Virus record (IMG/VR): IMGVR_UViG_3300029983_000007
Coordinates: 1-64,000 of that record
Reading direction: 5' to 3' (one strand)
DNA length: 64,000 nt
The position numbers were made by a program, and so were the translations under genes. The first letter of the stretch is position 1. Every line of letters starts with the position of its first letter. This document shows, one piece after another, positions 53,637-58,876 of this stretch. The notes below the pieces were generated by a model. The model ran no database searches and had not been told where the DNA came from. It saw only the letters and a program-made list of their open reading frames with translations.

Positions 53637-53687
53637 ATAATATAATTATTTTTTGTTATTATATATAAAATTGAAATGATTCAAACA

Positions 53688-54884
53688 TCAAATATCTTTA
53701 TTTGGCGTACGAATATATCCATTATTTATATGATTTTTAAATAATTTTTCTAATAACACTTTTTTACGAGCTGCATTATATGCGCCCACACTATTTTTAG
53801 TAAATTCGCATATGTTGTCATATTTATTAGCTTCTTCTTGTAATGTTTCTTCTGTCCAATATCCAAGTTTAACTTGTTTTTCTGAATAACCTTGATTTTT
53901 GTGATTTTTAAATAATTCATCTAACATTTTTCTACTTTTGGCTGCAATATAAGCAGAACTATTTTCTCTAAATTCTTTTCTTGTTTTATATTTATTAGCT
54001 TCTTCTTGTAAAGATTTTATTGTCCATTTTAATCCACCTGATCCTAATGATCCAGCTTTGACTGAATTTATCATAATCCATTCATTATTTTCATAAACAT
54101 CAACCCAATATATTTCCTTTTTTATAGCGTCATTAGAATTTAAATTTTCTTCTAATAATTTATACTTTGGAAGAGGAATATTATTTATTTTACAAAAATT
54201 AATCAATGATTCTTTTTCACTAAATAAATGTTCTTTGTCTCGTCTATTTATATTGTTTGTTAATCCAACATAAGCATTATTATAATTTGTGAATTCATAA
54301 ACATATATAACATAACTATTTTCTTTCCATTCAATTATATTCCGACGTCCTTGATTGTCGTGATTTTTAAATAATTCATCTATTAATCTATTTTTATACG
54401 CAATTTTATAACCTGTGCTTTTTTTCTGAAATTCTCCTCTTGTTATATATTTATTAGCTTCTTCTTGTAATCTATCAAACGTCCAATAACCTTTTTTATT
54501 TACTTTAATATCAAATCCGTTATTAGAATGATTTTTGAATAATTCATCTATTAATTTTTTACTTAATGCTGCACTATATGCAGATTTGTTTTTACGAAAT
54601 TCTCCTCTTGTTTTATGTTTGTTTGCTTCTTCTTGAAGTTTTTCTCTATTCCAATGCCCAATAGTCATTTTACCTTCTTCGTAACCTTTATTTATGTGAT
54701 TTTTAAATAAATCATCAATTAATTTAATTTTAGATGCCGCTATATAAGCGGAGTTGCATTTTTCTCTAAATTCTTTTCGATTTTCGTATTTATCAGCTTC
54801 TTCTTGCAATTTGTCAATAGTCCAATAACCAATAGGTTTACGACTTTCATTTATAAAAATATTATAATTTTTACTTATTTTCAT
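53688..54884 (-). CDS. GIY-YIG homing endonuclease with five helical repeats
   Basis: VIYVYEF...YVGLTNN..RR..EH; 5x W..E.LQEEA.KY..R.EF...LFKNH. Confidence 0.8.
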   Translation of the reverse strand: MKISKNYNIFINESRKPIGYWTIDKLQEEADKYENRKEFREKCNSAYIAASKIKLIDDLFKNHINKGYEEGKMTIGHWNREKLQEEANKHKTRGEFRKNKSAYSAALSKKLIDELFKNHSNNGFDIKVNKKGYWTFDRLQEEANKYITRGEFQKKSTGYKIAYKNRLIDELFKNHDNQGRRNIIEWKENSYVIYVYEFTNYNNAYVGLTNNINRRDKEHLFSEKESLINFCKINNIPLPKYKLLEENLNSNDAIKKEIYWVDVYENNEWIMINSVKAGSLGSGGLKWTIKSLQEEANKYKTRKEFRENSSAYIAAKSRKMLDELFKNHKNQGYSEKQVKLGYWTEETLQEEANKYDNICEFTKNSVGAYNAARKKVLLEKLFKNHINNGYIRTPNKDI

Positions 54885-54947
54885 TGAATAATATATTTTT
54901 AACTATATATTTATAAAAAAATCAATGATAAATTATTGAATTTTTTG

Positions 54948-55027
54948 AACCTATGATGGGAGTCAAACCCACATTTACAACTTCAATTACAGTTACTTGA
55001 TTCGTAGTCAAGACTGGTTACATAGGC
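54948..55027 (-). ncRNA. D-armless tRNA-like RNA, anticodon ACG (Arg)
   Basis: Acceptor GCCTATG/CATAGGT; stem CTTGA/TCAAG with loop CTACGAA; T-arm GTGGG-TTTGACT-CCCAT; no D-arm. Confidence 0.7.
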
Positions 55028-55040
55028 ATATTATATCTAC

Positions 55041-55523
55041 TCATTTTTTTATAACAATATCTATATTTTCTAATTTTTCTTTTCTTGAGTATCTATATTT
55101 ATATTTATTAATACCTTCTATATCTGAATCTAAAAATTGTTCTATAAATTCTTCAGTTTGCATAGTAACATATTTTTTAGTACAATTTTCTTTATTGTCA
55201 CCATAATGACTAGTATCAAATCCTACTATCCAATAATTGTTGAATTTTTTATAATTTTCCTTTGTCACATCACCATCAATTTCTAAGCCTTCAGTCCAAT
55301 TTAAAAATGAATCAGAATCAAAAAATCGTCCATATGTTAATCCTCCATGTACACTTATGGTATTCATATCATCATATGAAACTTCATACAATGGATGATT
55401 AGTAGGTAATAATATATAACCATTCCCCCATCCAAATTCCATTATTAATGGATAATTTTGTATAGTAGATAAATGTTTAGTAAGATAATTCTCAACTATT
55501 AGTGTGTAAATTCCGTATTTCAT
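55041..55523 (-). CDS. Conserved phage protein (HGGLTY...GFD..H) with RKEKLENI tag
   Basis: WGNGY, VHGGLTY, WIVGFDTSHYGD. Confidence 0.65.
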   Translation of the reverse strand: MKYGIYTLIVENYLTKHLSTIQNYPLIMEFGWGNGYILLPTNHPLYEVSYDDMNTISVHGGLTYGRFFDSDSFLNWTEGLEIDGDVTKENYKKFNNYWIVGFDTSHYGDNKENCTKKYVTMQTEEFIEQFLDSDIEGINKYKYRYSRKEKLENIDIVIKK

Positions 55524-55543
55524 AATATTTTTTTATAATAAAA

Positions 55544-55574
55544 CAAATATACAAAAAAATTGTTATATATACAA
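55544..55574 (-). promoter_or_regulatory. Bacteroidota-type promoter
   Basis: Minus strand TTG-N20-TATATTTG. Confidence 0.6.
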
Positions 55575-55581
55575 CTTAAAA

Positions 55582-56106
55582 TTATATTTTTTCTTGAATA
55601 TTGTCAACATCTGTATCAACTATTTTCAAATCATCTTGTATGTCATCCACATGATCTGTTATATTGTCAACATCTGTGTCAACAGATTTTAAATTTTCTT
55701 GTATACCATCAATGTGATTTTTTATGTTGTCTACATCTGTATCAACATATTTTAATTCTACTTCTATATCATCAACATGATATTTTATATCATCTACATC
55801 AGTTCCTATGTGCTCAGTCATAACTTCTATTTTTTCAGATAACTCTGCTATCTTAGATATAATAGCATCAGTTCTACTTCCACTTATTTTAGCAATATAA
55901 CCTAAGACTGGTAAAGCAACTCCTTGAAAAAAAACAGAAACTATATATTGCATCCATGCAACTGTTCCTGATGGTTGACTAAAAAATAATGGAATTATAA
56001 CTAACAATGTTATTATCCAAAACATTGTCATACTAGATAATGAATCTGATAAAAAAATTGCAAATTTTTCTTGCGATGACTTTAATTTCTCAACTAATTT
56101 ATTCAT
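55582..56106 (-). CDS. DUF1003-like membrane protein with 21-aa C-terminal repeats
   Basis: Two TM helices, Q...LPV motif; repeats of DTDVDNI..H.D.IQ..LK.V; true start MNKLVEK at 56106. Confidence 0.6.
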   Translation of the reverse strand: MNKLVEKLKSSQEKFAIFLSDSLSSMTMFWIITLLVIIPLFFSQPSGTVAWMQYIVSVFFQGVALPVLGYIAKISGSRTDAIISKIAELSEKIEVMTEHIGTDVDDIKYHVDDIEVELKYVDTDVDNIKNHIDGIQENLKSVDTDVDNITDHVDDIQDDLKIVDTDVDNIQEKI

Positions 56107-56160
56107 ATATTTTTTATATTTATATATAAATAGTATAAATAATATTAATTTTTTTTTTTG

Positions 56161-56243
56161 TGGGACTAGTGGGGCTCGAACCCACAACCTCCGAAGAGAT
56201 CAGTTTTACAGACTGACATGACTACCTGTGTCATATTAATCCC
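56161..56243 (-). tRNA. tRNA-Tyr(GTA), long variable arm
   Basis: GGGATTA/TAGTCCC; TCAGT-CTGTAAA-ACTGA; TTCGAGC T-loop. Confidence 0.9.
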
Positions 56244-56252
56244 ATATTTTTG

Positions 56253-56377
56253 TGGTAGCAGATGGACTCGAACCACCAACTTCTGAGACATCGGCCCAGC
56301 ACTCTATCCTTCGCTCGTTTCAAATTATTTATTCTAGATTCATAATTATCCCCTTTGTGCTTTTGAGTTACACTACC
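56253..56377 (-). ncRNA. tRNA-like RNA with about 50-nt D-loop insertion, apparent anticodon GAT
   Basis: GGTAGTG/TGCTACC; D-stem ACTC/GAGT around a 60-nt loop; CTGGG-CCGATGT-CTCAG; GGTGG-TTCGAGT-CCATC. Confidence 0.65.
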
Positions 56378-56419
56378 TTTTTTTATTGTAATATTCTTTA
56401 TTTAATTTTTTATTGAGTG

Positions 56420-56498
56420 TACTGCCGAAGGGACTTGAACCCTCATACACCAATTACCTTGTTAATGACTGGATATAAGCCAGTGGGGATACGACAGT
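56420..56498 (-). ncRNA. D-armless tRNA-like RNA, anticodon TAT (Ile)
   Basis: ACTGTCG/CGGCAGT; ACTGG-CTTATAT-CCAGT; GAGGG-TTCAAGT-CCCTT. Confidence 0.7.
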
Positions 56499-56514
56499 GT
56501 ATTTATTTTTGTTG

Positions 56515-56591
56515 TTGGTGAAGTGGGACTTGAACCCACATGTGACCAATTAACCTTTCTACTACTTATCAGGCAGAGGGTATATTCACCA
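56515..56591 (-). ncRNA. D-armless tRNA-like RNA, anticodon GAT (Ile)
   Basis: TGGTGAA/TTCACCA; CTGC-CTGATAA-GTAG; GTGGG-TTCAAGT-CCCAC. Confidence 0.7.
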
Positions 56592-56602
56592 ATGTTATTT
56601 AG

Positions 56603-56676
56603 TAGTCTCGGTGAGACTTGAACTCACGATTTATTGCTTATCAGGCAATTGCTCTAACCAACTGAACTACAAGACT
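56603..56676 (-). tRNA. tRNA-Ile(GAT)
   Basis: Canonical cloverleaf; ATTGC-CTGATAA-GCAAT. Confidence 0.93.
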
Positions 56677-56716
56677 ATTTTAGTTTATTATTTTTTTATT
56701 GGTATGATACTATTTG

Positions 56717-56797
56717 AGCACATTGACAGACTCGAACTGTCGGTGTTTATATCTCGCTTTTGCAGAACGATGCCTTCGCCACTCAGACCAAATGTGC
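56717..56797 (-). tRNA. tRNA-Cys(GCA)
   Basis: GCACATT/AATGTGC; U73 discriminator; loop CTGCAAA; 12-nt variable region. Confidence 0.9.
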
Positions 56798-56806
56798 ATT
56801 TCTATT

Positions 56807-57682
56807 TTAAAAATTAATTTTTCTTCCTTTTGTCCAACCATTAAATATCCATTCATCTAATTCACATTTTTTAATTTTCTTGTTTTTATTGATATTTAAA
56901 TTATAAATCCAACAAGTATTAAATTGTGAATTTTTATTTCCTTTTTGTTGTATTGAATTTTTTTCTCCAATTTTACGTTTCGTTTCATCAGTAATTTTTC
57001 TGCCAGAAAAAATATGCTTTAATTCACCAGATAAATATCGAGGATCATTTGTTGATACGTTTAATGTATTATTTTTATTGTCTTTAACCGTAATAAATCC
57101 TTTCTTGTGAAATATTAATTCACCAGATAAATATCTTGGATCATCAATAGAAACTCTAATTTTTTCGTTGTTTTTATTTTTAACAACAACAAAACCTTTA
57201 CCAACACACTGAAATTCACCTGATAAATATCTTGGATCTTCTGAATTCACAGATAATGTATTATTATCTTTGTCTTTAACCATAATCAATCCTTTCATTA
57301 TACTTACCAATTCACCTGATAAATACCTTGGATCTGTTTTATGTACTGATAATGTATTGTTATCTTTATCTTTAACAGTAATCAAATTATATGAATTAAA
57401 TCCTCCTCCACCTAATATTATATTATAAGTATTACCATTTTTAATAAATTCATCATTTACCAATTCTTTTTCTTTTTCCAACATTTTTTCTTTATCATCA
57501 AAATTAAATAACACAATTTTTTCAAAATTTTCAACTCCAAATTCTTTTATAGCTTTTTTAATATTAGATCCAGAACCCATATATTTATCATGTATGTTTT
57601 CTGTAATATGAATACCAATATAAATTTTATTATTTAACTTATTTGTTATTTGATAAACTATATAATATTTTTTATTTTCCAT
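56807..57682 (-). CDS. GIY-YIG homing endonuclease (Seg-like) with internal repeats, inside the tRNA array
   Basis: YIVYQITN..N.KIYIGIH...Y.GSG; 4x V..DDPRYLSGE repeats; NUMOD3-like end. Confidence 0.85.
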   Translation of the reverse strand: MENKKYYIVYQITNKLNNKIYIGIHITENIHDKYMGSGSNIKKAIKEFGVENFEKIVLFNFDDKEKMLEKEKELVNDEFIKNGNTYNIILGGGGFNSYNLITVKDKDNNTLSVHKTDPRYLSGELVSIMKGLIMVKDKDNNTLSVNSEDPRYLSGEFQCVGKGFVVVKNKNNEKIRVSIDDPRYLSGELIFHKKGFITVKDNKNNTLNVSTNDPRYLSGELKHIFSGRKITDETKRKIGEKNSIQQKGNKNSQFNTCWIYNLNINKNKKIKKCELDEWIFNGWTKGRKINF

Positions 57683-57751
57683 AAGTCGAACTTTTTATCA
57701 CTATATATAAAAAGTTCGATATCAATTTTATTAATATTTATTTATTTTTAG

Positions 57752-57838
57752 TACCGTTAGGTGGAATCGAACCACCGCAATCTATAAGACTGAAAGGTTT
57801 ATGAGACCTCCGTAATAACCAACTCTACTCATAACGGT
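57752..57838 (-). tRNA. tRNA with CAT anticodon (elongator Met or Ile2), long variable arm
   Basis: ACCGTTA/TAACGGT; GAGGT-CTCATAA-ACCTT; variable stem AGTC/GATT. Confidence 0.8.
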
Positions 57839-57911
57839 ATATTTATGTTTAAATATATAGTTAATATCATACTAATAGTATGATATTGTTAAATATTTTA
57901 AACTATTTTTG

Positions 57912-57985
57912 CGGGAAAGTTGAGATTTGAACTCAAGACACTTTGCTTAACAGGCAAACGCTCTAACCAACTGAGCTACATTCCC
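57912..57985 (-). tRNA. tRNA-Asn(GTT)
   Basis: Canonical; TTTGC-CTGTTAA-GCAAA. Confidence 0.93.
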
Positions 57986-57990
57986 TTATG

Positions 57991-58078
57991 CGCACTGGGT
58001 AGGATTTGAACCTACGGTGGAGATTACTCTCACTGGATTAACAGTCCAGACTTTTCGACCAACTAAAGCAACCAATGC
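57991..58078 (-). tRNA. tRNA-Asn(GTT), long variable arm
   Basis: GCATTGG/CCAGTGC; CTGGA-CTGTTAA-TCCAG; variable stem GAG-TAAT-CTC. Confidence 0.88.
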
Positions 58079-58080
58079 AT

Positions 58081-58117
58081 ATAATAACTTAATAATAACT
58101 TAATAATAACTTAATAA
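58081..58117. repeat. 11-bp tandem repeat (3 copies) in a tRNA spacer
   Basis: ATAATAACTTA x3. Confidence 0.85.
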
Positions 58118-58119
58118 AG

Positions 58120-58194
58120 CGGACTATAACGGTTACGGTCCGTTAATTTTACTTGAGTGACAGTCAAGTTCTCCACCAAGGAGCCTAATAATCC
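58120..58194 (-). tRNA. tRNA-Asp(GTC) with non-canonical T-loop
   Basis: GGATTAT/ATAGTCC; CTTGA-CTGTCAC-TCAAG; AACGG-ACCGTAA-CCGTT. Confidence 0.8.
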
Positions 58195-58201
58195 ATTTTT
58201 G

Positions 58202-58286
58202 TACTGGTAACGGGGTTCGAACCCGTGAGGAAATTTCTTTCCACAACATTGAAAGTGTTGCGACCTAGCCACTAGTCCATACCAGC
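58202..58286 (-). tRNA. tRNA-Glu(TTC), long variable arm
   Basis: GCTGGTA/TACCAGT; CAACA-CTTTCAA-TGTTG; variable stem GGAAA-GAAA-TTTCC. Confidence 0.88.
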
Positions 58287-58296
58287 ATTTTATTAG

Positions 58297-58373
58297 CGGA
58301 TTATATCGGGCTCAAACCGACTTCCTCAACCGTGACAGGGTTGTATGCAAAGTATCACTCACACCTATAATCC
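58297..58373 (-). tRNA. tRNA-Asp(GTC)
   Basis: GGATTAT/ATAATCC; CAACC-CTGTCAC-GGTTG; TTTGAGC T-loop. Confidence 0.85.
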
Positions 58374-58382
58374 ATTTTTTTG

Positions 58383-58453
58383 TGGGATAGGAGGTAATCG
58401 AAACCTCGTAGTTATGATTTACAGTCATTCTAAGTAACCCTGACCTCTATCCC
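58383..58453 (-). tRNA. tRNA-Tyr(GTA), short variable arm
   Basis: GGGATAG/CTATCCC; ATGA-CTGTAAA-TCAT; GAGGT-TTCGATT-ACCTC. Confidence 0.82.
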
Positions 58454-58487
58454 ATTTATTCATTATCCAGTATTTCAAAGATCATTT

Positions 58488-58532
58488 AAAAACAAAAAAC
58501 TCAGTTCTTATTTTTAAGAACTGAGTTTTTTT
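58488..58532 (-). terminator. Attenuator terminator ahead of the tRNA array
   Basis: Transcript AAAAAAA-CTCAGTTCTT-AAAAAT-AAGAACTGAG-TTTTTTGTTTTT. Confidence 0.85.
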
Positions 58533-58557
58533 ATTATTCACATAATAATTTATATAC

Positions 58558-58689
58558 TTATCCAGTTCTTCCTACATTATTTTCATCATCATTAATATAA
58601 TCATTAATCATATCAATACATATCTCTTCCATATTGTAATTGATATTACAATTGCGATAAATGCTATATATGTTATTAATGTTATTCAT
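58558..58689 (-). CDS. Putative attenuator leader peptide (43 aa)
   Basis: MNNINNIYSIYRNCNINYNMEEICIDMINDYINDDENNVGRTG; last codons complementary to the terminator 5' arm. Confidence 0.75.
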   Translation of the reverse strand: MNNINNIYSIYRNCNINYNMEEICIDMINDYINDDENNVGRTG

Positions 58690-58718
58690 GATATTTACTT
58701 TTACTTTGTTTTTATTTG

Positions 58719-58789
58719 TTGCGGACGTCTGATTCAAACAGCGACTATGGGTTATGAGCCCATTGAGATATCATTTCTCCACCTCCGCG
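58719..58789 (-). tRNA. Initiator tRNA-fMet(CAT), copy 2
   Basis: C1:A72 mismatch; ATGGG-CTCATAA-CCCAT with three G-C pairs; irregular T-stem. Confidence 0.8.
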
Positions 58790-58805
58790 ATATTTTTTTT
58801 ATTTG

Positions 58806-58876
58806 TTGCGGACGTCTGATTCAAACAGCGACTATGGGTTATGAGCCCATTGAGATATCATTTCTCCACCTCCGCG
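58806..58876 (-). tRNA. Initiator tRNA-fMet(CAT), copy 1 (identical, 87-bp period)
   Basis: Exact duplicate of 58719..58789. Confidence 0.8.

Follow-up and report, generated by a model that had tools for sequence, protein, structure and literature searches.

To our knowledge, the cloverleaf order of arms is treated as universal outside animal mitochondria, and it is assumed by tRNA finders, by Rfam and in annotation. Metazoan mitochondrial D-armless tRNAs, for example tRNA-Ser(AGY), have a short connector and no D hairpin; these organellar forms lost the D loop and the elbow contacts between the D and T loops, and they need co-evolved factors (PMC4013460, PMC9427863, PMC7609411). Allo-tRNAs and other 8/4 or 9/3 tRNAs are also non-canonical. 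They were mined from sequences, are partly phage-borne in tRNA clusters, and have altered acceptor and T stem lengths with the arm order kept (PMC5389517). Here we describe three tRNA-like elements in a 64,000-nt stretch of DNA (positions 1 to 64,000 of the IMG/VR virus record IMGVR_UViG_3300029983_000007), which is called the window as a whole. The elements E1 (54948-55027), E2 (56420-56498) and E3 (56515-56591) are probably working elongator tRNAs of the types Arg-ACG, Ile-UAU and Ile-GAU, respectively. They would represent a phage-borne structural class, called the rewired class below, in which the segment corresponding to positions 10-21 lies 3' of the anticodon arm.

Anatomy, covariation and proposed fold

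All three elements are encoded on the minus strand, to which the positions in this section refer. The 7-bp acceptor stems consist of six Watson-Crick pairs and G1.U72 in E1 (80 nt), six Watson-Crick pairs and one U.G in E2 (79 nt), and seven Watson-Crick pairs in E3 (77 nt). The 5-bp T arms (E1, 54956-54972, GUGGG/UUUGACU/CCCAU; E2, 56428-56444; E3, 56523-56539) have the loop UUUGACU in E1 and UUCAAGU in E2 and E3. The anticodon stems are 5 bp in E1 and E2, and 4 bp plus a U.U in E3. Each 7-nt anticodon loop contains U33 and A37. The anticodons are located at 55003-55005 (ACG in the loop CUACGAA of E1), 56475-56477 (UAU of E2) and 56568-56570 (GAU of E3). The acceptor stem is separated from the anticodon stem by 8 nt in E1 and by 7 nt in both E2 and E3, starting with U8-A9, and a D hairpin cannot be drawn between position 9 and the anticodon stem in any of the three. 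Between the anticodon arm and the T arm, 21-23 nt containing UAAUUG(G/A) are present. The discriminator base is located at the end of each element, and none of the three genes encodes the 3' CCA.

The anticodon stem is preceded by a single nucleotide; the 3 nt before that nucleotide pair with the trinucleotide adjoining UAAUUGG on its 5' side, and this pairing is called the D' helix. In E1, CAGU (55013-55016), directly 5' of the anticodon stem, forms four pairs with ACUG (54990-54993), which immediately precedes the D-loop-like motif. In E3, ACC (56579-56581) forms three pairs with GGU (56553-56555); this helix is present in the RNAfold minimum-free-energy structure and shows covariation. In E2, CCC (56486-56488) and AGG (56457-56459) form two pairs (CC/GG) and a C.A mismatch. 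The 5' neighbour of the D' 3' strand is an 8-nt bulge CAUUAACA in E2, which is the mark of the 79-nt subtype, and the bulge AGAAA in E3. The transposed motif is UAAUUGA in E1 (54983-54989; A14 A15 U16 U17 G18 A19), followed by A20. It is UAAUUGG in E2 (56450-56456), followed by U20 and GUAU, and UAAUUGG in E3 (56546-56552), followed by U20 and CACAU. The A19 of E1 is matched by U56 of its own T loop UUUGACU. A canonical tRNA-Ile(GAU), identified by both ARAGORN and Rfam (69.7 bits), is located 11 nt upstream of E3 (56602-56676). Its anticodon loop and T loop are identical to those of E3. The stretch resembling positions 10-21 is GGUU-AAUUGGUCA in E3 and GUUC-AGUUGGUUA in the canonical neighbour.

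The window contains three occurrences of the pattern of the motif plus the T arm, and 100 shuffles give an expectation of 0.00. The covariance model R1 was built on alignment A1, which contains 24 sequences of the 76-77-nt subtype including E3 and excluding E1 and E2. R1 gives 44.9 bits for E1 (E 3.4e-10) and 59.4 bits for E2, both outside the training set, and 90 bits for E3, which is in it. The next-best match in the window has 30.4 bits, and the canonical tRNAs of the window have at most 19 bits. According to R1, E1, E2 and E3 have the segment order that defines the rewired class together with an Arg, Ile or CAU anticodon. ARAGORN detects none of the three in the window and misses 66 of the 70 family members. 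With the Rfam tRNA model (RF00005, threshold 29 bits), E3 (30.6 bits) and E1 (29.5 bits) are marginal, and E2 is unmatched even at E<=10. The only Rfam family matched by the three elements is tRNA.

Base pairs were counted on alignment A2 and on a structural parse of 68 distinct sequences. The MAFFT and covariance-model alignments misplace one gap in the 76-nt forms and hide the third D' pair in 35 rows, and the structural parse was used instead. On alignment A2, pairing in the D' helix reaches 98.2%, with changes on both sides at each of its three pairs. When the partners of all 22 structure pairs were slid by 1-3 columns as a control, 42-50% were paired, versus 95.4% for the true structure. 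Among the 68 sequences, D' pair 1 is C:G in 49, U:A in 10, A:U in 7 and G:C in 2, and D' pair 2 is G:C in 32, C:G in 19, A:U in 11 and U:A in 6, with no mismatch or wobble at either pair. The acceptor stem (96.4% paired) and the T stem (96.6%) also show covariation across the family. U8, A9, A14 and G18 are invariant, A37 is present in 68/68 sequences, and U.U is frequent at the 27:43 pair. No mismatch is observed at the 19:56 pair, where 66 sequences have G:C and two have A:U, E1 (UAAUUGA with UUUGACU) being one of the two. The 15:48 Levitt pair, formed between the second A of the motif and the U just before the T stem, is A:U in 81 cases, G:C in two and A.C in one. The nucleotides of U8:A14, R15:Y48, G18:U55 and G19:C56 are all present in transposed order. 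Judged from these sequence data, the UAAUUGG motif behaves as a D loop, with its GG as G18G19. Given the covariation at 19:56 and 15:48 and the invariant A14 and G18, the D' 3' strand and the motif following it can be read together as the counterpart of canonical positions 10-21, and the 5' linker correspondingly as that of positions 22-26. As another arrangement, RNAfold draws a local hairpin at UAAUUGG in E1 and E2, as if the D arm had been moved as a unit. This candidate was rejected, as fixed-register pairing is only 13-66% per position over the 68 sequences.

A preliminary description of this DNA had listed the three elements with an intact acceptor stem, T arm and 7-nt anticodon loop with U33, and with 7-8 nt at the position of the D arm; its coordinates, on the minus strand, are exact. 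Its proposal of a family with one shared new architecture agrees with the more than 80 phage relatives found by the covariance model and the pattern scan. TAATTG had been compared to a D-loop sequence at the variable-arm position, and the covariation of the motif with the T loop bears this out. The extension of the anticodon helix by the linker, proposed for all three elements, holds for E1 and E3 and for the covarying family, and is weakest in E2. The label 'D-armless', on the other hand, is a misnomer, because the D stem and the D loop each have a counterpart and only the connectivity is swapped. The same description had named decayed pseudogenes lacking covariation as the contrary case; both the extended helix and the motif covary.

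From the anatomy, the covariation, the identity-nucleotide pattern and the distribution observed, we infer the three-dimensional fold, expression, charging and decoding as follows. The moved segment would comprise positions 10-21, namely the D-stem 5' strand and the D loop. The chain would start with acceptor 1-7, U8, A9, 1-2 nt, a 3-nt strand replacing 22-25, one nucleotide equivalent to 26, and the anticodon arm. Then a bulge of 2-11 nt, a 3-nt strand replacing 10-13, U, and A14 A15 U16 U17 G18 G19 N20 would follow, and the chain would end with a few nucleotides terminating in A-U48, the T arm and acceptor 66-72. In the simplest description, the segment order is 1-9, 22-43, bulge, 10-21, ~A21-U48, 49-76. 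The two 3-nt strands would form a D-stem-like helix that, by stacking, extends the anticodon stem into a single long hairpin. Contacts of the relocated loop with the T loop (G18:U55, G19:C56), with U8 (U8:A14) and with U48 (A15:U48) would rebuild the usual L-shape with a different connectivity. In canonical tRNA crystal structures, position 44 abuts position 10 in the coaxial stack of the D and anticodon arms, and A21 is located beside the 15:48 layer. The new connections would therefore join spatial neighbours. The elements would be transcribed jointly with the minus-strand tRNA cluster, their ends processed and CCA added. The host ArgRS or IleRS would charge them via the anticodon, A20 or U20, and N73, and EF-Tu would deliver them through the intact 12-bp acceptor/T helix. 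E1 would decode CGU/CGC/CGA (A34 being converted to inosine), E2 would decode AUA, and E3 would decode AUU/AUC.

Family members, function and rival explanations

In the pattern scan of viral contigs, at least 120 IMG/VR loci matched. About 70 of the listed loci have the rewired architecture, and the remainder are class II tRNAs or a separate 89-94-nt tRNA-Ile(UAU) family. R1 gives 85 matches at E<1e-6 in the fetched loci. The GC content of the carrier loci is 26-57%. An identical copy of E2 is present in each of two loci, L037 and L051. Among the GTDB bacterial and archaeal species genomes, the architecture was found in three of the 120 listed pattern matches, and a fourth member came to light in a locus retrieved on other grounds. 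Contigs of metagenome-assembled genomes (MAGs) carry all four, and one of these contigs has a phage-like array of 18 tRNAs in 8 kb; a cellular origin of the class was rejected on these grounds. An Ile-GAU copy with 87-90% identity to the E3 core (90% over 62 nt) is present in 77 Streptomyces phages, and in the phage Mildred21 the rewired element directly follows the tRNA nucleotidyltransferase gene. An Arg-ACG copy is present in ~299 phage records, 298 of them from Vibrio phages; the one record inspected, Vibrio phage 70E37.6, is a T5-like member of the Demerecviridae. Maribacter phage Panino (PP540027.1) has a rewired tRNA-Arg(UCU) at L243:1495-1574. None of these Streptomyces, Vibrio and Maribacter phage copies is annotated as a tRNA. 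In Panino, the 'hypothetical protein' gene PANI_CDS0068 (L243:1428-1535) overlaps the 5' part of the rewired gene and is probably a spurious gene call. For E1 and E2, no blastn match was found in the phage collection.

The separate tRNA-Ile(UAU) family was observed in ~35 IMG/VR loci (for example L013, L026, L064 and L118) and also at L188:2559-2649. These highly conserved genes of 88-94 nt, called tRNA-Ile(UAU) by ARAGORN, have a normal D arm and a long variable region with GAUAAUUGG, and their anticodon stem is closed by an A.C mismatch. The family and the rewired class have UAAUUGG in common and could be related by evolution.

The anticodons of the 68 sequences are Arg in 40 (UCU 23, ACG 8, UCG 5, CCU 4), Ile in 27 (UAU 15, GAU 12) and CAU in one. 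In bacteria, the identity set of tRNA-Arg is A20, C35, U/G36 and A/G/U73, with A20 as the main determinant for ArgRS, and that of tRNA-Ile includes A73 and U20 (as D20) (PMC9976931, Table 1). In the family, GG is followed by A in 40/40 Arg members and by U in 26/27 Ile members, and 27/27 Ile members have A73 as the discriminator. Thus, the synthetase identity nucleotides agree with the anticodon. The 3' CCA is encoded in 24/68 members, and C directly follows the discriminator in 65/68. Another tRNA with the same anticodon is present in the fetched locus for only 8/70 members, and the rewired gene is the sole carrier for the other 62. In near-complete tRNA arrays, the rewired genes occupy an otherwise empty Arg or Ile slot; for example, one locus (L116) has 20 ordinary tRNAs, none of which is Ile, and two rewired Ile genes. 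E2, the only AUA reader found in the window, would serve a codon (ATA) that amounts to 46.9 per 1000 codons there. The position of E1 is taken by a canonical tRNA-Arg(ACG) in the syntenic relative L051. In strain contigs the neighbouring open reading frames (ORFs) differ by ~11-18%, and among the 40 best-supported of 246 differences, none lies in E1 or E2 and one lies in E3; this variant, at 56529, is located in the T loop at the variable position 59. The E3 core is 90% conserved between the 25%-GC peat phage of the window and Streptomyces phages, whose GC content is ~49% (PMC13191466). The preliminary description had left several functions open, and genuine, aminoacylatable tRNAs are the option preferred by this evidence, namely A20/U20, A73, encoded CCA and the filling of empty slots.

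Several points weigh against working tRNAs of the proposed fold. The three-dimensional fold is a reading of covariation and topology only. E2 has only two D' pairs, and the helix extension is weakest there. D' pair 3 is formed in only 68% of the sequences in the structural parse. RNAalifold, applied to the 77-nt subtype, gives the acceptor, anticodon and T stems and not the 3-bp D' helix, so that the support for this helix comes from pair counts, not from energy. The codons of E1 are rare in the window (CGN, 4.2 per 1000). The anticodon of E3 duplicates that of the adjacent canonical tRNA-Ile(GAU), and plain decoding capacity therefore leaves the retention of both genes unexplained. A canonical and a rewired gene of the same anticodon also occur together in five other loci (L022, L037, L051, L101 and L117). 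As the loci were collected with a pattern that fixed UAAUUGR and U33, the frequency of U33 is not an independent result, and the restriction to Arg and Ile could be partly a sampling effect. This concern is countered by R1 matches with divergent motifs (UAACGGA, UAGCGG, UAAGUGG and UAAACGG), which are likewise Arg or Ile.

As for the purpose of the fold, we tentatively consider an anti-defence adaptation, which is possible and at present rather doubtful. The transposed-D tRNA would be a back-up resistant to cleavage, carried alongside the canonical isoacceptor or in its place. The fold would keep what the synthetase, EF-Tu and the ribosome need, and would drop or reshape the surfaces of the D arm and variable region that are recognised by host nucleases targeting tRNA. 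In a DNA-level version, the sites of endonucleases targeting tRNA genes would be removed or reshaped. If this is true, the long-variable-arm 'twins' of Asn, Glu, Met and Cys described below would represent the same strategy on other tRNAs.

The pairing of E3 with a canonical tRNA-Ile of identical anticodon loop 11 nt away, which recurs in the five loci listed above, also fits decoys or sponges, namely tRNA-shaped RNAs outside translation that soak up anticodon nucleases, other tRNA-targeting defence effectors or synthetases. Phage tRNAs are known to act against tRNA-cleaving defences (PMC10264068, PMC11555353). A decoy, however, has no obvious need for A20 in all Arg members, A73 in all Ile members, encoded CCA, or a 12-bp acceptor/T helix of the size used by EF-Tu, and the rewired gene is the sole carrier of its anticodon in most clusters. 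Taking the identity nucleotides, CCA, slot filling, codon demand, synteny and strain conservation together, a pure decoy role seems unlikely.

It also seems quite unlikely that the gene order, in otherwise functional tRNAs, is a DNA-level escape from a free-standing homing endonuclease whose target is the canonical tRNA gene, with rearranged alleles spread by co-conversion with the endonuclease gene. E1 is located 63 nt upstream of a GIY-YIG homing-endonuclease-like ORF (53688-54884, minus strand; Pfam 21.2 bits against a cut-off of 22.6, E 3.7e-4). In place of the 1.4 kb of the window that holds this ORF and E1 (53651-55034), the close, syntenic relative L051 (L051:4388-4529) has a 141-bp spacer with a canonical 73-nt tRNA-Arg(ACG), whose acceptor stem is unrelated. 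Phage tRNA clusters typically contain SegB-like genes. An endonuclease-like hit within 300 nt was found for 7.1% of the rewired genes versus 1.9% of other tRNAs (Fisher p=0.015). However, this enrichment consists of 5/70 cases, up to three of which are possibly the window's own, and the query proteins were also taken from the window. About 87% of the members have no endonuclease-like hit within 2 kb, and the Streptomyces and Vibrio copies adjoin ordinary genes. The linkage is suggestive at E1 and weak overall, and it was rejected as a general cause, the enrichment being weak and partly circular.

Regulatory or other non-translational tRNA-like RNAs, such as primers, mimics of T-box or ribosome-rescue RNAs, or small-RNA precursors, are very unlikely, since Rfam matches tRNA alone, the anticodons specify only two amino acids and go together with the determinants of the corresponding synthetases, and the elements always occur within tRNA arrays in the same orientation. 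Decaying pseudogenes, in which the D arm was lost by deletion and the features are shared by descent alone, would suit the presence of several other aberrant tRNA-like genes in the cluster and the failure of standard detectors to find or clearly score E1-E3; this reading is most improbable in view of the compensatory changes in D' (pairs 1 and 2 each occur as four pair types and never as a mismatch) and at 19:56 and 15:48 (two exchanges each), the conserved core in peat and Streptomyces phages, and the elements kept within strains while the flanking genes diverge. The identity nucleotides, encoded CCA, slot filling, codon demand, synteny and strain conservation jointly argue against it.

The surrounding tRNA cluster

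The window has a GC content of 25%. As its proteins include a split DNA polymerase, a primase, an SbcC-like nuclease and many HNH and GIY-YIG homing endonucleases, the source is taken to be a large phage. DNA runs holding the window sequence are from peat and soil metagenomes only, no RNA run was among those listed for the locus, and no close relative was found among deposited phages by megablast of 24 kb of the window. The three elements lie within a minus-strand tRNA cluster at ~54948-58875, in the same orientation as the other tRNAs. ARAGORN counts 7 tRNAs in this cluster, and the Rfam tRNA model counts 13. The following features are on the minus strand unless otherwise stated.

The 398-residue GIY-YIG protein encoded at 53688-54884 contains about six copies of a ~45-residue repeat, which flank the nuclease domain on both sides. 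The repeat has the pattern G(Y/H)W(T/N)...LQEEA(N/D)KY...R.EF......Y.AA...L.D.LF.NH, and no family matching it was found in Pfam. One metagenome contig joins 55029 directly to 56418, which would place E1 right after E2. A 125-nt tRNA-like gene at 56253-56377 (Rfam tRNA 39 bits) has a D loop with a 57-nt insertion; its anticodon loop is CCGAUGU, in which C33 replaces U33, and this could be a third GAU anticodon. Just 5' of this gene, strain contigs have deletions of 8 and 17 nt, and 638 other letters take this place in one contig.

Two tRNA-Asp(GUC)-like genes, 58297-58373 and 58120-58194, have the anticodon loop CUGUCAC and the start GGAUUAU in common, and neither is detected by ARAGORN or Rfam. 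In one of the pair, the D stem is rich in G.U pairs, 7 bp long and capped by a 6-nt loop, and the T loop contains U56; the other has a 5-nt D loop and the non-canonical T loop ACCGUAA. The gene at 58297-58373 was considered as an extra rewired member on account of UUGA and a U56 T loop, and was rejected because it folds like tRNA-Asp(GUC) with an odd 7-bp D stem. A 71-nt tRNA-like gene at 58383-58453 (Rfam 32.5 bits, R1 30.4 bits) has a possible UAG (Leu) anticodon; its D stem and anticodon stem are mutually exclusive, and it has no UUGG motif. Identical 69-nt copies of a tRNA(CAU) are located 87 nt apart at 58720-58788 and 58807-58875 (Rfam 42.6 bits each), both with a shortened and imperfect T arm.

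Variable-arm hairpins of 8-15 nt are present on class I tRNAs (Cys, Met, Asn, Glu) at 56716-56797, 57751-57838, 57990-58078 and 58201-58286. Such long-variable-arm tRNAs often adjoin a normal-size tRNA of the same anticodon, as in the case of tRNA-Asn at 57911-57985 beside 57990-58078. This 'twin' pattern, with tRNAs of 85-95 nt for Glu, Asn, Met, Thr, Lys and Pro, is also observed in other phage clusters and in many IMG/VR loci. Within the cluster, a perfect inverted repeat of 17 bp at 58494-58531 (both strands), followed on each strand by a U tract, resembles a bidirectional terminator; it is the strongest of 7 terminator-like sites, versus 0.8 expected. Between an Asp-like gene and the long-arm tRNA-Asn, a tandem array of ~3.5 copies of an 11-nt unit (consensus AAGUUAUUAUU) occupies 58085-58125.

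Significance and comparison with known systems

The transposed D arm looks like a second natural way of building a tRNA. The data suggest that a gene with a transposed internal segment can specify the same L-shape, tertiary contacts and synthetase determinants, and that phages across many host phyla maintain the rewired genes. The family is widespread, conserved and overlooked by annotation. Phage tRNA repertoires are under-counted, as judged from the members missed by ARAGORN and left unannotated in several hundred GenBank phage records, and the Arg and Ile decoding capacity is mis-estimated in codon-usage work. For structural and synthetic biology, the class also offers a tRNA scaffold that looks naturally orthogonal. 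Because cultured carriers are available (Streptomyces BE-cluster phages, T5-like Vibrio phages and Maribacter phage Panino), charging, folding and purpose are directly testable.

The rewired class has many features in common with canonical bacterial and phage tRNA-Arg and tRNA-Ile, namely the 7/5 acceptor/T helix, the T loop UUCRANY, the 7-nt anticodon loop with U33 and A37, and the nucleotides U8, A14, R15:Y48, G18G19 and A21-like. A20 (Arg), U20 and A73 (Ile), and the place in phage tRNA arrays are also shared. In contrast to the canonical form, positions 10-21 follow the anticodon arm and do not precede 22-25, the anticodon arm and not the D loop closes the D stem, and neither a separate variable loop nor the strand crossing from position 9 to 10 is present. 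The mitochondrial D-armless tRNAs likewise have a short connector and no D hairpin, whereas the rewired class keeps the D-loop nucleotides, which covary with the T loop, and its genes are phage genes using the bacterial machinery. E1-E3 do not belong to the mitochondrial type, since UAAUUGG with G18G19 is kept and the carriers are the phage window, IMG/VR contigs and cultured phages, not an organelle. Compared with allo-tRNAs, the rewired class keeps the 7/5 lengths and alters the segment order.

In Cyanidioschyzon merolae, permuted tRNA genes are said to encode a whole tRNA in circularly permuted order, and processing reportedly restores the canonical tRNA. Segments are rearranged at the gene level in both cases, but only an internal segment is moved in the rewired class. 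E1-E3 are not permuted genes of this kind, because the 5' and 3' acceptor strands are located at the ends of each element and are mutually paired; nothing suggests a rearrangement at the RNA level. Viral tRNA-like structures such as that of turnip yellow mosaic virus (TYMV) form the 3' ends of plant-virus genomes and build the acceptor arm via a pseudoknot, giving an L-shape recognised by a synthetase. The TYMV structure, which is also mentioned in PMC9976931, likewise reaches a tRNA-like L-shape by a non-cloverleaf connectivity, whereas the rewired genes are free-standing (76-91 nt), have a standard acceptor stem and occur in DNA phages. Class II tRNAs with a long variable arm do not accommodate the elements either, since the elements have no D arm and no conserved hairpin at the UAAUUGG loop. 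No description of this architecture was found in full-text searches of the literature, subscription-only papers being outside their scope, or in a review of non-canonical tRNAs and the allo-tRNA paper. The rewired class, which lacks the D hairpin that defines the cloverleaf, appears to work like an ordinary tRNA and, on sequence grounds, is a new structural variant of tRNA.

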